From Pelomyxa schiedti (taxonomy: Eukaryota > Protista > Evosea): a stretch of 41,563 nt of DNA. Positions 7,817 to 23,858 of this stretch are shown piece after piece. Position 1 is the first letter of the stretch, and each line of letters starts with the position of its first letter. A model generated the notes under the pieces. It was given only the letters and a program-made list of their open reading frames with translations. It did no database searches and was not told where the DNA came from. The stretch is taken from the NCBI GenBank assembly GCA_020536535.1, contig JAHLWZ010000357.1, positions 1 to 41,563 of the forward strand, written 5' to 3'. The translations under genes and the position numbers were made by a program.

Positions 7817-10800
7817 CTAGTGCTTGCTAGAGTGGTGTGCTGAGCTGTGGTGAGACGAGCTGTGGTGCGTGGAAGCGGACCCTGACACCTTGACGTCTCC
7901 CTTCACGTCCACCTTGGCGTCGACCTTGGCGTCGCCGTGGGCGTGCGACGACCCGTGGTGCGACGTCGACGGCGTGTGGTGCGATGACTTGTGGTCTCCG
8001 TGCCCGCCGTGCCCGGACGACTTGTGGTGCGAGCTTCCCTTGGCGTCCGCCTTGGCGTCCACCTTCACGTCTGCCTTGACGCCCACGCCGGCCCCGACGC
8101 CGACGCCGACGTCGGCCTTGACTCCTGCGTCGGCCTTCACTCCCAGGTCAGCCTTTACGCCGAGGTCGGCCTTGACTGCGCCGTCGGCCTTGGCCTTGCC
8201 CTTCTTGCTGCTGCTGCTCGAGGACGACGAGGACTTTGACTTGGACTTCTTGGCGTCGGCCTTGGCGTCCACGGTGAGCGACGCGTTGACCGAGTTGACG
8301 GCGGTCGTGGTGGCGTCGGCGACGACGTCGACGGCTCCCTCCAGGGCCTTGGTTGCGCCCGAGATGGCTCCCTTCAGGCTGAACTTGTGCCCCTTCTTGG
8401 AGGATGAGGACGATGACGACTTGGATTTCTTTCCGGATGCCTTGCCGCTTACTTTGAGGTCGGCCTTGGCTCCTGCACCAGCACCAGCACCGGCGTCGAC
8501 CTTCACGTCTGCCTTGACAGATGCGTCGGCCTTGACGTCCACCTTGGCGTCGGCCTTGACGTCTGCTTTTACGTCGGGCTTGGCCTTGCCGCCCAGGCCG
8601 AGGCTGAGCTTGAGCCCTCCCTTCTTGGATGAAGAGGATGATGACGACTTGGAACCCTTGGAACCTTTGCTCTTTCCGAACCCGAGATGGAGTCCGCCGG
8701 TCTTCACTGAGGCTTCTGCCTTGCCGTCAGCCTTGGCGTCCACCTTGACGTCAGCCTTGGCATCAACCTTCACGTCTGCCTTTGCGTCTACCTTCACGTC
8801 TGCCTTGACATCAGCTTTGCCCTTTCCTCCAAGGCCGAGCTTGAGTCCAAGACCACCTTTGCCACTTCCAGACTTCGACTTTGAAGAGGAGGAAGACGAT
8901 TTAGAGCCCTTCTTACCGAAGCCAAGCTTGAGTCCGAGGCCGCCCTTGCCTCCTGCATCGGTCTTCACATCTGCCTTCACATCAGCCTTTGCATCGACCT
9001 TCACGTCTGCCTTCACATCAGCCTTGGCGTCGACTTTCACGTCTGCCTTGACATCGGCCTTGCCCTTGCCACCAAATCCGAGTTTGAGTCCGAGTCCACC
9101 TTTGCCGCTTCCGGACTTGGATTTAGAGGATGATGAAGATGACTTTGATCCACTCTTCTTTCCACCGAGTCCGAGCTTGAGGCCCAATCCACCTTTGCCC
9201 TTTGCGTCTGCCTTGGCATCCACCTTCACGTCTGCCTTCACATCAGCCTTAACGTCAGCCTTGGCATCCACCTTCACGTCAGCTTTTACATCAGCCTTTC
9301 CCTTGCCACCAAGTCCAAGTTTGAGGCCGAGTCCTCCCTTTCCGCTTCCTGATTTGGATTTAGAGGATGATGAAGATGACTTTGATCCGCTCTTCTTTCC
9401 ACCAAATCCAAGCTTGAGTCCGAGTCCACCCTTGCCTCCTGCGTCTGCCTTCACATCGGCCTTGGCATCCACCTTGACGTCTGCCTTCACATCAGCTTTC
9501 ACGTCAGCCTTGACATCAGCCTTGCCCTTTCCTCCAAGGCCAAAACCGATCTTGAGTCCTCCCTTGCCGCTTCCTGACTTGGACTTAGATTTAGATTTAG
9601 ACGATGATGAGGACTTGGATCCACTCTTCTTTCCACCGAGCCCAAGCTTCAGTCCCAGTCCTCCCTTGGCACCTGCATCAGCCTTGGCATCAACCTTCAC
9701 ATCAGCTTTGGCATCGACCTTCACATCGGCCTTGACATCAGCCTTGGCGTCAGCTTTGCCCTTTCCGCCAAGTCCGAATCCAATCTTGAGTCCTCCCTTT
9801 CCGCTTCCTGACTTGGATTTGGAAGATGATGAAGATGACTTTGATCCGCTCTTCTTTCCACCAAGTCCGAGCTTGAGTCCCAATCCTCCCTTTCCGCCTG
9901 CGTCTGCCTTCACATCAGCCTTGGCATCGACCTTCACGTCAGCCTTTACGTCAGCCTTGACATCAACCTTGGCGTCAGCCTTGCCCTTTCCGCCCAGACC
10001 AAGACCAATCTTGAGTCCTCCCTTTCCACTTCCTGACTTGGATTTGGATTTAGAGGATGATGAGGACTTGGAACCAGAGCCACTCTTCTTTCCACCCAGT
10101 CCGAGTTTGAGGCCAAGTCCACCTTTGCCCTTCACGTCAGCCTTGGCATCAACCTTCACATCTGCCTTGACGTCGGCCTTGGCATCGACCTTCACGTCTG
10201 CCTTTACATCTGCCTTGCCCTTTCCTCCAAGGCCAAGACCAATCTTGAGTCCTCCCTTTCCACTTCCGGACTTGGATTTGGATTTGGAAGAAGACGATGA
10301 CTTCGACCCACTCTTCTTGCCACCCAATCCAACCTTCAGTCCGCCCTTGGCTCCAGCATCAACCTTTACATCAGCCTTGGCATCGACCTTCACATCAGCC
10401 TTGCCCTTTCCACCAAGTCCAAGCCCAACCTTGAGTCCTCCCTTTCCGCTTCCTGACTTGGAAGAGGATGACTTCGAGCCTTTGCTTCCATGAAGTCCTA
10501 CCTTCAATCCTCCTTTGGCACCAGCATCAACCTTGATATCAGCCTTCACACCTCCCTTGACCTTGCCAGAAGCTGAGGATGAGGACTTGGAACCAGATTT
10601 CTTCTTGCCACCAACTTCAAGATGGGGGAGGTCTACGCCAGCTTTAACCTTCACACCTCCTTTAACTTTGCCACTGCCGCTTGCACTTCCAGATTTGCTG
10701 CCCTTGACCTTCGCAGAAGCCTTTACTCCGCCTTTAAGTTCGGGGAGGTCAACACCAGCTTTCACCTTGCCACTCCCCTTGACGGCCTTACCACTGCCGC

Positions 10801-13800
10801 TCTTGCTCTTGCTGGAAGATTCCTTGCTCTTGCTTCCTTTCACCTTGCCCTTGATCTTCAAGTCGGCCTTGGCATCAACCTTTCCGCCAGCCTTCACATC
10901 CACCTTGGCATCAGCCTTTACGTCGGCTTTAGCATCGACTTTGCCTGCTCCCTTTACATCAACCTTACCGGATCCCTTGGCATCGACCTTCGCGTCGGCT
11001 TTGATATCAGCCTTTCCATCAACCTTCACGTCGGCCTTGACATCAACTTTCTTCTTGCCGCCGAAGAGTCCAGCAAAGAATCCCTTCTTCTCGGGCTTGG
11101 CAGGTGTTGTTACTTTGACTTTGGCATCAACTTTAACGTCGGCCTTTGCGTCTACCTTGGGTCCCTTGACGTCGACCTTGGCATCAACCTTTGCATCGGC
11201 CTTAACGTCAGCCTTGGCATCAACCTTGGCAGCTCCTTTCACATCAACCTTAGCATCAGCCTTGACATCAGCTTTGACATCGGCCTTGCCACCGACTTTG
11301 ACTGAAGCATCAACTTTGAGTCCACCCTTGGCCTTTCCGCTTCCTGACTTCGATGAGGAAGACTTGGAGCTGGATTTGCTGCCACTCTTCTTGCCTCCGG
11401 GTAGTTTGATATCAGCCTTGACATCGGCCTTTCCACCGGCTTTGACTGAAGCGTCTAATTTGAGTCCGCCCTTGGCCTTTCCGCTTCCTGACTTCGACGA
11501 TGAAGACTTGCTTCCTTTCCCTACCTTGACCCCCTTCACATCTGCCTTGACTGCGAGTTTTGCATCAGCCTTGACGTCCGCTTTTACGTCTGCTTTTACA
11601 TCAGCTTTTACGTCTGCTTTCACGTCGGCCTTCACATCAGCCTTGACGTCTGCCTTGGCGTCGACCTTGACTTTAGCATCAGCCTTAACATCAACCTTGC
11701 CCTTGCCTCCGAACTTTCCAAAGAAGCCACCACCTCCAGAGGCAGATTTCTTCCCATCAACCTTAACAGTGGCGTCAACCTTGGGCAACTTGGTTTTTCC
11801 ACTGGAAGACGATTTGCTTCCCTTGCTGCCCTTGCCTCCTTTGACCTTGATGTCAGCCTTTACTCCACCCTTGACATCAACTTTAGCATCGGCCTTCACG
11901 TCGCCCTTGACTCCAACAGCGATCTTCGCCTTGCCGCTTCCCGACTTGGATTTGGAGCTGGAAGACTTGGAGCCAGACTTGCTTCCTTTCTTGCCCAGGC
12001 CAAGTTTAAGACCACCCTTAGCATCAACCTTCACGTCTGCCTTGACATCAGCCTTGACGTCGGCTTTCACGTCGGCCTTGGCATCGACTTTTACGTCTGC
12101 TTTTGCTTTGCCTCCGAGTCCCAACTTGAGTCCTCCCTTTCCGCTGCCGGACTTGGATGACTTTGAGGAGGAAGACTTTGAACCAGAGCCGCTCTTCTTT
12201 CCACCGAGTCCGAGTTTGAGGCCGAGTCCACCTTTGCCCTTGGCATCAACCTTCACGTCTGCCTTGGCATCAACCTTTACATCAGCCTTGGCGTCGACCT
12301 TCACGTCAGCCTTGCCCTTTCCGCCAAGTCCGAGTCCAACCTTGAGTCCTCCCTTGCCGCTTCCTGACTTGGAGGATTTGGATGACTTGGAACCAGAAGA
12401 GGAAGACTTTGATCCGCTCTTCTTTCCACCGAGTCCGAGCTTGAGTCCAAGGCCGCCCTTGGCTCCGGCGTCAGCCTTGGCATCAACCTTCACGTCTGCT
12501 TTCACGTCAGCCTTGGCATCGACTTTGACGTCGGCTTTAGCCTTTCCGCCAAGTCCGAGCTTGAGTCCTCCCTTCCCGCTTCCTGACTTGGATGACTTAG
12601 AACCAGAAGAGGACGACTTTGATCCACTCTTCTTTCCACCAAGTCCGAGCTTGAGTCCGAAACCGCCCTTGCCGCCTGCATCAGCCTTGGCGTCGACCTT
12701 GACATCAGCTTTCACATCAGCCTTGGCATCAACCTTCACGTCGGCCTTGACATCAGCCTTGCCCTTTCCGCCGAGACCAAAACCAATCTTGAGTCCTCCC
12801 TTGCCGCTACCAGATTTGGATTTGGATTTAGAGGATGATGAGGACTTGGAACCAGAACCACTCTTCTTTCCACCCAGTCCGAGTTTGAGGCCAAGTCCAC
12901 CTTTGCCCTTCACGTCAGCCTTGGCATCAACCTTCACGTCGGCCTTGGCGTCGACCTTGGCATCGACCTTCACGTCAGCCTTGACATCAGCCTTGGCGTC
13001 AGCTTTGCCCTTTCCGCCAAGTCCGAATCCAATCTTGAGTCCTCCCTTGCCGCTTCCTGACTTGGATTTGGATTTGGAAGATGATGAAGATGACTTTGAT
13101 CCACTCTTCTTTCCACCGAGTCCGAGCTTGAGGCCCAATCCTCCCTTTCCGCCTGCGTCTGCCTTCACATCGGCCTTGACGTCAGCCTTAGCGTCCACCT
13201 TAGCATCAGCCTTGACATCAACCTTGGCGTCTGCTTTGCCCTTTCCACCAAGGCCCAGACCCAGTTTAAGTCCTCCTTTGCCGCTCCCAGACTTTGACTT
13301 GGAGCTTGATCCAGATGATGAAGACCCAGAACCACTCTTCTTTCCTCCCAAACCGAGCTTGATGCCGAATCCGCCCTTCGCTTTGCCGTCAGCCTTGACG
13401 TCTGCTTTTACGTCAGCCTTGGCATCAACCTTCACGTCTGCCTTAACATCGGCCTTGACGTCAGCCTTGACATCAGCTTTGCCCTTGCCTCCAAGACCGA
13501 ATCCGATCTTGAGTCCTCCCTTGCCGCTTCCTGACTTGGAGGATTTGGATGACGAAGAAGAACCAGACTTGCTCTTCTTCTTGCCACCGAGTCCCAGTCC
13601 GAGTTTGATTCCACTGCCACTCTTAGCATCGACTTTCACGTCGGCCTTAACGTCGGCTTTTGCGTCGGCCTTGACATCTGCTTTTACATCAACCTTGGCG
13701 TCAGCCTTGCCCTTTCCGCCGAAGCCAAGTCCGAGTTTGAGTCCTCCCTTTCCACTTCCTGACTTGGAGGACGATGAAGATGACTTTGAGCCAGAGCCGC

Positions 13801-15413
13801 TCTTCTTTCCACCGAACCCGAGCTTGATTCCGAGTCCCCCTTTGCCCTTTGCGTCAGCCTTGGCATCGACCTTCACGTCTGCCTTGACGTCTGCCTTGGC
13901 ATCGACTTTAACATCTGCCTTGACATCAGCCTTGCCCTTTCCGCCCAAACCGAGACCCAGCTTGAGTCCTCCCTTTGCTTTGCCGCTCCCTGACTTGGAT
14001 GACGAAGATGAGGAGGATTTGGATCCGCCCTTGCCACTGAAGCCAAGCTTGATGCCCAAACCGCCCTTTGCGCCGGCGTCTGCCTTAGCATCAACTTTCA
14101 CGTCTGCCTTGGGTTTAATGCCCATGTCAACATTCACGGCCGCCTTCGCCTTTGCGCTTCCAGACGAGGATGACGACTTCGAACTGCTCTTTTTGCCGCT
14201 GAGGCCTACTTTAATTCCGAGTCCGCCCTTGGCGCCGGCGTCAGCCTTAACATCAGCCTTGGCGTCAACCTTCACGTCTGCCTTTACGTCAGCCTTGACA
14301 TCAGCCTTGCCCTTTCCGCCAAGTCCGAATCCAATCTTGAGTCCTCCCTTGCCGCTGCCGGACTTCGACGACGAAGAGGAAGAGGATTTGGACCCAGATT
14401 TCTTTCCTCCCAAGCCGAGTTTGATTCCCATTCCGCCCTTTGCTCCAGCATCCGCCTTGACGTCTGCCTTCACGTCGGCCTTGACATCAGCTTTCACATC
14501 TGCTTTAACATCAGCTTTGACGTCTGCTTTAGCCTTTCCACCAAAACCAAGTCCGAGCTTGAGTCCTCCCTTGGCCTTCCCGCTTCCTGATTTGGAGGAA
14601 GAGCTTGATTTGGAAGATGACGATGATTTTGATCCTTTTTTGCCAAGCCCAAGACCAACTTTAAGTCCGAGTCCACCCTTGGCGCCGGTATCAGCCTTAA
14701 CATCAGCCTTGACTTCGGCTTTGGCGTCGGCCTTCACGTCTGCTTTTCCCTTAGCACCGAGGCCGAGTCCAAGCTTGAGGCCTCCCTTTCCGCTTCCTGA
14801 CTTTGACGACGATGAAGAACCTGAGCTAGAAGCTGACTTCTTTCCACCGAATCCAATCTTGAGACCAAGGCCTCCTTTGGCACCTGCATCGACCTTCACA
14901 TCTGGCTTCTTGGCGTCAACTTTCACATCCGCTTTTACGGCTACTTTCGCAGCTCCCTTTCCGCTTCCGGAGGAAGAGCTAGTGAGGCTCGAAGACGAGG
15001 ATTTTTTTGCAACATTGAGCTTCACTCCTACGTTTCGGTTAGAGAAAGCGAAAAGTTTTTCATCACGATACACTACGAAACACGAAAAATAATGATAACA
15101 AAAATACTACGAGAAAACAATTCGTTCAAACAACGAAACAGAACACAGAATACGAACCTGAACCTACGCCGACTTTAGCACCAGACCCCGCTCCAATTCC
15201 CACCTTGATTCCAAGACCGGCCTTGGCCTTTCCTTGCCCCGAACTGGAACTTGATCCAGAAGAGCTCTTCTTGGCAGCGACCTTTACGGCCGCACCTGCC
15301 TTGGCTCCGGCACCAACGGAAATCGATGCTTTCACTGCGGGTTTTGCCTTCCCCGAAGACGAGCTCGACGAGGATGACTTCGAGCTCGATGATGAAGAAG
15401 ACTTCGAACTCAT
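7817..15413 (-). CDS. Giant Lys/Gly/Ser/Ala/Asp/Val-rich repeat protein (~2,488 aa), 2 exons, His-rich C-terminus; function unknown
   Basis: Exon 1 is 15413-15158 (256 nt) and exon 2 is 15027-7817 (7211 nt), giving 7467 nt, an intact frame. The intron 15157-15028 has a gttcgt donor, a ctaac branch site and a tag acceptor. About 20 modules of ~75 aa show much synonymous variation between repeats. Confidence 0.88.
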
Positions 15414-23786: not shown

Positions 23787-23858
23787 TCCGATGTGGTGTA
23801 GTTGGCAACATCTCTGACTTTCACTCAGTGGCCCCGGGTTCGATTCCCGGCATCGGAA
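23787..23858 (+). tRNA. tRNA-Glu (anticodon TTC)
   Basis: Acceptor stem TCCGATG/CATCGGA, anticodon loop CT-TTC-AC within a CTGA/TCAG stem, and T arm CCGGG-TTCGATT-CCCGG; 72 nt. Confidence 0.95.

Follow-up and report, generated by a model that had tools for sequence, protein, structure and literature searches.

Introduction

Designed peptides with a regular alternation of cation, hydrophobic residue, anion and hydrophobic residue are widely used hydrogel materials. To our knowledge, the only natural precedent usually quoted for this pattern is a 16-residue stretch of yeast zuotin. The ionic self-complementary design was inspired by this natural segment (PMC2387071), and the designed sequences (RADA)4 and (KLDL)3 form β-sheet nanofibres and gels (PMC5629974). 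A gene on the minus strand of contig JAHLWZ010000357.1 of the anaerobic amoeba Pelomyxa schiedti (GenBank assembly GCA_020536535.1) encodes a giant protein that carries the designed-peptide pattern 29 times, in blocks twice as long, and combines it with hinges and charged linkers. The gene lies in a window of 41,563 nucleotides, which is the whole stretch of DNA that was analysed (positions 1 to 41,563 of the forward strand of the contig). The protein may be regarded as a kind of giant modular low-complexity scaffold protein, and the idea that it self-assembles is reasonable but unproven.

AHNAK-type giant repeat proteins are predicted to form linked antiparallel strands (PMC8833689). The title of the 1992 AHNAK paper, as cited in PMC2119538, speaks of a 'polyionic rod structure', and AHNAK was first described as mainly nuclear (PMC2119538). 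The segments listed for dehydrins are S-segments, F-segments, His-rich segments and Gly-rich phi-segments in addition to the K-segment of the EKKGIMDKIKEKLPG type, which is compulsory by definition (PMC8961592).

Gene structure

The predicted gene consists of two exons on the minus strand, starts with an ATG at 15413, ends with a stop codon at 7817-7819 and encodes a product of 2,488 residues, close to the ~2,490 residues given in an earlier sequence-only reading of the window. Exon 1 (15158-15413) begins with this ATG and comprises 85 codons and one base, and its Ser/Lys-rich and K/A/V/G-rich composition matches that of the rest of the protein. An in-frame TAA is present 6 nt upstream of the ATG. 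The intron (15028-15157), predicted from the sequence and the reading frame, is 130 nt long, is bounded by GT and AG and is in phase 1. Since there are in-frame stop codons inside the intron, it must be spliced out. The splice proposed earlier at 15157-15028 corresponds to this predicted intron, and the start of exon 2 is corrected from 15028 to 15027. Exon 2 (7817-15027) is a single uninterrupted coding exon of 7.2 kb including the stop codon and accounts for 97% of the coding sequence, the minus-strand frame being open without a break from 15073 to 7817. The P. schiedti genome contains 7.43 introns per gene on average (PMC8887013), and a 7.2-kb exon stands out as unusual for such an intron-rich genome.

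Module architecture of the giant protein

The giant protein has a mass of 237 kDa, an isoelectric point (pI) of 10.2 and a net charge of +332, and contains 560 Lys residues. Seven residues, namely K (22.5%), G (19.7%), S (15.9%), A (12.5%), V (9.8%), D (8.9%) and L (6.1%), together make up 95% of the chain, from which Cys, Arg, Trp and Tyr are absent and in which Glu occurs seven times. There is no transmembrane segment, the highest 19-residue Kyte–Doolittle mean along the protein being 1.1, and no signal peptide at the hydrophilic N-terminus, in line with what had been read from the sequence before.

With KSGSGK as the anchor at which the chain is divided, ~21 regular modules result, which are 62-82 residues long and each have the order Gly/Leu strand, tetrad block, Gly/Leu strand and Ser/Lys spacer. 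The first part is a short strand-like segment with L, I or F at every second position, followed by a net-neutral tetrad block of 24-32 residues, a second L-x-L-x-L segment with alternating L/I/F and a polybasic poly-Ser linker of ~20 residues. In a typical module, the tetrad block contains as many Lys as Asp residues, and the charge is +3 on each of the two Gly/Leu flanks and +4 on the linker, which has 12 Ser residues, giving a total of +10. Runs of three or more K-(A/V)-D-(A/V) tetrads form 29 blocks, which comprise 181 tetrads, or 724 residues in total, with KADV (95), KVDA (42) and KADA (27) as the counted forms. Ala and Val are coupled within the tetrads, with one of each in 133 of 165 (chi-square 58, p = 2e-14), indicating that constraint acts on the hydrophobic face, beyond composition alone. 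The autocorrelation of Asp at lag 4 is 0.71, and Tandem Repeats Finder (TRF) detects nested periods of 12/24/36 nt and about 225-237/459 nt.

The modules are arranged in two arrays around a less regular core, all read on the minus strand. Array 1 (11933-14788, residues 166-1117) consists of ~13 modules with five to eight tetrads per block. In the irregular core (10445-11932, residues 1118-1613), the tetrad runs are long, and there are turns that contain Pro as well as two GFF motifs. The first motif (11699-11737) is of the GGFFGKFGG type and is also present in paralogues on contigs C761, C183 and C807, and the second (11048-11089), KKGFFAGLFGGKKK, resembles the dehydrin F-segment. Array 2 (8861-10444, residues 1614-2141) consists of 7 regular modules. 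The C-terminal region (7820-8860) contains two degenerate modules, one short non-repetitive stretch, (G/A)VKAD repeats and a His/Ser-rich tail formed by the last ~70 residues (7820-8032). The number, order and positions of the modules agree with the sequence-only reading, which had described about 20 ordered modules in two arrays around a less regular core.

Selection on the protein sequence

When 18 modules were aligned codon by codon, codon positions 1, 2 and 3 differed in 10.7%, 14.2% and 52% of the 10,890 aligned codon pairs, respectively, and the differences comprised 4,237 synonymous and 1,953 non-synonymous changes. This excess at third positions shows that the protein sequence is under purifying selection in the minus-strand frame, as expected for the coding gene claimed in that frame. 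Third positions differ by 24% in the closest pair of modules and by 53% in the median pair, while the median amino-acid difference is 0.18. Synonymous sites of the modules have thus drifted almost to saturation, with the amino-acid sequence nearly constant. Since even the closest modules differ at 24% of third positions, the modules must be old. The closest pairs join a module of array 1 with one of array 2. The modules differ by ~25% in DNA sequence, so that unambiguous assembly is possible and an assembly artefact is unlikely.

Two long antisense frames lie over the same region on the plus strand, at 7869-10493 (874 codons) and 10515-15092 (1,525 codons). Since the variation between modules falls on third codon positions when read in the minus-strand frame, these antisense frames are ruled out as coding. 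A back-translated triple-tetrad pattern matches 111 times in the window and not once in 100 shuffles. The strict triple-tetrad DNA pattern likewise has 111 matches in the whole 52-Mb genome, where a control pattern has none, and so every strict match lies in the giant gene. These observations confirm the giant modular open reading frame.

Predicted structure

The structure predictions and searches described below used single exons rather than the joined two-exon protein. AlphaFold2 was run on three modules with an alignment of 12 rows and on six modules with an alignment of 6 rows. Both runs agree in predicting, for each module, a flank strand, a tetrad hairpin of two ~13-residue strands, a second flank strand and a disordered linker. 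The mean predicted local distance difference test score (pLDDT) is 39 for three modules and 47.8 for six, with values of 50-62 in the strands and ~30 in the linkers, and the predicted TM-score (pTM) is 0.50. The earlier suggestion of β-forming blocks separated by flexible spacers is therefore reproduced in outline, with strands in the tetrad blocks and in both flanks and disorder in the spacers, albeit only at a pLDDT of 39-48. A complex prediction with four copies of a 62-residue module core gave a score of 0.03, which is evidence neither way.

Comparison with known systems

The giant protein has the same register as RADA16-I, (RADA)4, KLD12, (KLDL)3, and EAK16, namely cation, small hydrophobic residue, anion and small hydrophobic residue, so that an extended chain gives a charged face and a hydrophobic face and each block is net neutral. 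The assignment of this alternation to the RADA16-I/KLD12 design in the sequence-only reading is borne out by the literature for (RADA)4 and (KLDL)3 (PMC5629974). The giant protein differs from the designed peptides in its 24-36-residue blocks, in its coupled Ala/Val pairs, in having 29 blocks in one 237-kDa chain and in the Gly/Leu strands and strongly cationic Ser/Lys linkers around the blocks. The regular alternation in net-neutral blocks, found in 181 tetrads of 29 blocks that each have equal numbers of K and D, is the sequence criterion of the ionic self-complementary class. The protein would accordingly be placed in this class by its sequence definition, with fibre or gel assembly as a candidate behaviour.

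Among known proteins, those of the AHNAK 'polyionic rod' type are the nearest analogues, joined by dehydrins where the Ser tracts, the F-like motifs and the His tail are concerned. Like AHNAK, AHNAK2 and periaxin, the giant protein is encoded nearly entirely by one exon. It would also be intracellular as they are, has tandem modules of short predicted strands rich in K, D and V in which hydrophobic and charged residues alternate, and has a tripartite layout with non-repeat ends. Unlike AHNAK and periaxin, the giant protein has no PDZ domain detectable by Pfam in exons 1 and 2, and its modules are 62-82 residues long with tetrad periodicity, compared with repeats of 128-165 residues with heptad periodicity. 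It also lacks the Pro-rich turn motif and has Ser/Lys linkers. A word search over proteins of 1,321-4,203 residues gave no periaxin-like match, and no sequence relationship was detected, the AHNAK repeats being compared by their description only. Membership of the AHNAK/periaxin family is therefore ruled out by the absent PDZ domain and the different repeat, the repeats having in common only the general principle of alternating strands.

The giant protein shares with dehydrins runs of 5-9 Ser residues, Gly-rich segments, a putative F-segment-like motif flanked by Lys, a His-rich stretch, a high Lys content and a modular low-complexity grammar. The KKGFFAGLFGGKKK and GGFFGKFGG motifs have the G-F-F...G-K-K core in common with the F-segment EXXDRGXFDFX(G/K), but the DRG and the Asp residue are missing. 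The 24 runs of at least five Ser residues are followed by K or G and never by D or E, whereas a dehydrin S-segment consists of 4-6 Ser residues followed by acidic ones. The giant protein thus has ~24 Ser tracts without an acidic tail compared with one in dehydrins, and its tetrad blocks have no dehydrin counterpart. No K-segment was found in the giant protein by a regular-expression search, and Pfam Dehydrin (PF00257) did not match the exon-2 product or three modules at E <= 1. Dehydrin membership is ruled out by the absence of the K-segment. A weak profile match of the tetrad runs to Bactofilin (PF04519), a family that likewise has Val/Ala-rich, β-prone, polymer-forming repeats, reaches 17-19.7 bits against a Pfam gathering cut-off of 27.9. 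Bactofilin membership is therefore ruled out as well, and the match is most likely compositional.

Related proteins in Pelomyxa and in environmental sequences

A Pfam search with the exon-2 product and three modules gave only sub-threshold matches (Bactofilin, Omp28, Glyco_hydro_2 and DUF7223), which were taken as compositional and not as homology, and no family was found for exon 1. A word-index search with exon 2 and three modules gave no credible relative; an SR-related protein, a bacterial FtsN-like protein and two low-complexity proteins were rejected as low-complexity matches. An exhaustive phmmer search of 1.84 billion representatives gave 86 matches, nearly all of them to other four-residue repeats (TTKA, DPRx and PEVK-like repeats), which were rejected as periodicity matches. 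The ESM Atlas gave no usable match, a search of the PDB by sequence gave none, and a literature search for the repeat strings found no match. The Pfam, word-index, phmmer, Atlas and PDB searches are thus in accord with the earlier statement that no named family is recognised. The giant protein itself was returned by neither of the two large protein collections, and it may be missing from, or modelled differently in, the deposited P. schiedti proteome.

Looser paralogues are present on at least six other contigs of the genome. Features common to them are K-h-D/E-h strands, Ser tracts with basic residues behind them and the GFF motif. The paralogue locus on contig C761 (44687-50475; L013, L019) is large and contains K-h-D/E-h strands, GFFGFFGG motifs and Ser tracts that lead into RKRK, in open frames of up to 1,710 residues that are interrupted by assembly gaps, and shows 61% identity over 80 residues to the core of the giant protein (window 10934-11182). 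On contig C1081 (303-1652; L012), a MORN-repeat protein (Pfam MORN 2.4e-17) carries a single embedded module, consisting of a Ser tract, GLKLG and a short K-A/V-D-V run, sited between MORN repeats. This MORN protein is a candidate docking partner for the giant protein. A 727-residue open frame on contig C807 (L018:662-2845) has paralogue-type C-terminal modules including GFFGFFGG, and its non-repetitive N-terminal half has no match in Pfam or the PDB. The members on contigs C183 (L017:1995-3866), C1185 (L014:1257-2021, minus strand) and C526 (L015:1824-2984) have KP(E/D)VKV strands together with Ser/Lys tracts and look PEVK/AHNAK-like, and in the C1185 member an N-terminal domain of ordinary type precedes (KPDVKVDM)n. 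The giant protein is one member of a family with no known function, which as far as seen is confined to this lineage.

An environmental repeat family comprises P0010, P0091 (L016), P0093 (L020) and P0094 (L021), of which P0010, P0093 and P0094 come from JGI metagenomes and Logan assemblies. In these three, as in the giant protein, the unit runs from an alternating K/G-x-D-x block through a GGKGG(F/L)G(I/L)K strand and a Ser tract to a basic segment, and the environmental unit ends with GGKGGFGIKMPKFG, a Ser tract and EDDGTGKRVKKVKG. Profile–profile alignment of the giant and environmental unit alignments by hhalign scores 42.8 (94%), compared with 26.9 for reversed columns, 10.6 +/- 2.5 for column shuffles and 19.6 +/- 3.8 (maximum 30.7) for shuffles of six-column blocks. 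This comparison indicates a common module grammar of the giant protein and the environmental family, either via distant homology or via convergence. Unlike those of the giant protein, the Ser tracts of the environmental family end with EDDGTGKR, which resembles the dehydrin S-segment, its strand carries MPKFG, and its alternating blocks are irregular. P0093 and P0094 pass the Pfam Dehydrin threshold (60.5 and 44 bits) through their Ser-acidic S-segments, whereas the giant protein does not. P0093 has no match in the Pelomyxa genome at E <= 0.001.

The open reading frames flanking the giant gene on both strands have no Pfam family, and so the neighbourhood gives no clue. A tRNA-Glu (TTC) gene at 23787-23858 on the plus strand is the sole Rfam/ARAGORN match in the window. 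Elsewhere in the genome, a small-subunit (SSU) rRNA gene on contig C59 (18787-23349) spans 4.56 kb compared with a model of 1.8 kb. An overlong SSU rRNA gene is known for Pelomyxa.

Possible roles of the giant protein

We tentatively favour an intracellular structural scaffold of sheet-pairing modules whose association is electrostatically gated, a reading to which we give somewhat less than an even chance. An extended tetrad block would have one K/D face and one Ala/Val face. Antiparallel sheets would form by pairing of the tetrad blocks and their flanks, with in-plane salt bridges and with small and large hydrophobic residues packed between sheets. Pairing within one chain would produce a long AHNAK-like 'polyionic rod', and pairing between chains would produce a network. 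Association would be resisted by the charge of +10 per module that the flanks and the Ser/Lys linkers carry, as long as this charge is not screened through phosphorylation of Ser or through polyanions. Some members of the family have a single module grafted onto MORN or other domains. Several points weigh against such a scaffold. The confidence of the AlphaFold2 models is low, and a Foldseek search with the six-module model gave no similar solved fold, only generic β-meanders with a TM-score of at most 0.16. The net charge of +332 and the Gly plus Ser content of 36% would equally suit a permanently disordered chain, and the phospho-switch on the linkers is pure inference. We regard as unlikely that the protein is a natural ionic self-complementary block copolymer, in which sheets between chains would give a reversible cytoplasmic or cortical gel or fibre, the poly-Ser linkers would be an off-switch released by phosphorylation or polyanions, and modules grafted onto MORN and other proteins would be co-assembling docking tags.

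The low AlphaFold2 confidence would also suit a permanently disordered protectant of the dehydrin or late embryogenesis abundant (LEA) protein type, in which the tetrads would be solubility-neutral spacers and the chain would serve as a molecular shield, bind ions or membranes, or hold water as a polymer in stress or encystment. The Ser runs, the Gly-rich segments, the two F-segment-like motifs and the His-rich tail are consistent with this, and P0093 and P0094, the database proteins with the matching module order, pass Pfam Dehydrin. Such a role is nevertheless improbable, because the compulsory K-segment and any Pfam Dehydrin match at E <= 1 are absent, the Ser tracts lead into Lys and Gly rather than acidic residues, and a chain that is never structured would not readily account for the strict register of the tetrads, the coupling of Ala and Val or the alternation of L/I/F in the flanks. 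A nuclear or nucleolar polycation, serving through its Lys/Ser linkers as a condensate scaffold that binds chromatin, RNA or polyphosphate in the manner of SR-related proteins and H1 tails, seems distinctly unlikely. The protein has no RNA- or DNA-binding domain and not a single Arg residue, whereas RS-type domains use Arg, and half of its mass consists of net-neutral tetrads and hydrophobic Gly/Leu strands that a simple polycation would not need. The pI of 10.2 and the 560 Lys residues agree with a polycation, the sole match of the word search with the full-length query is the Ser/Lys-Arg-rich SR-related protein, the units of Ser tract and RKRK in the paralogues look like nuclear localisation signals, and AHNAK too was first described as mainly nuclear (PMC2119538).

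Export to a coat, cyst wall or matrix, with O-glycosylation of the Ser tracts and secretion independent of a signal peptide, is very improbable, because the protein has no signal peptide, no transmembrane segment and no Cys, and the in-frame stop codon shortly before the ATG speaks against an overlooked leader exon. In favour of export, extracellular matrix proteins commonly have Ser-rich repeats and Gly-rich segments of an elastomer-like kind. A non-functional open frame, either a repeat expansion kept open by its composition or an assembly artefact, would account for the antisense frames that are also open for 874 and 1,525 codons and for the failure to find the protein in either large protein collection. 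This explanation, already disfavoured, is extremely unlikely, because third-position divergence across the 18 modules is five times that at positions 1 and 2, the DNA difference between modules permits unambiguous assembly, and the start codon and splice sites, like the composition that exon 1 has in common with the rest of the protein, are what a real gene would have.

Significance

If the scaffold or gel modules do assemble, the giant protein would be an example of how such a material is built and controlled in a cell, and would be a ready-made template for recombinant block-copolymer materials. If the gel or fibre reading is true, the protein would represent an undescribed kind of cytoskeletal or matrix material in eukaryotes, with the RADA16 and KLD12 hydrogels as its man-made counterparts. 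If there is no assembly, the gene would still be a clear case of strong purifying selection on a sequence of very low complexity. The giant protein and its paralogues define a small protein family of a little-known anaerobic amoeba, which as far as seen does not extend beyond this lineage, with an environmental family of matching module grammar.

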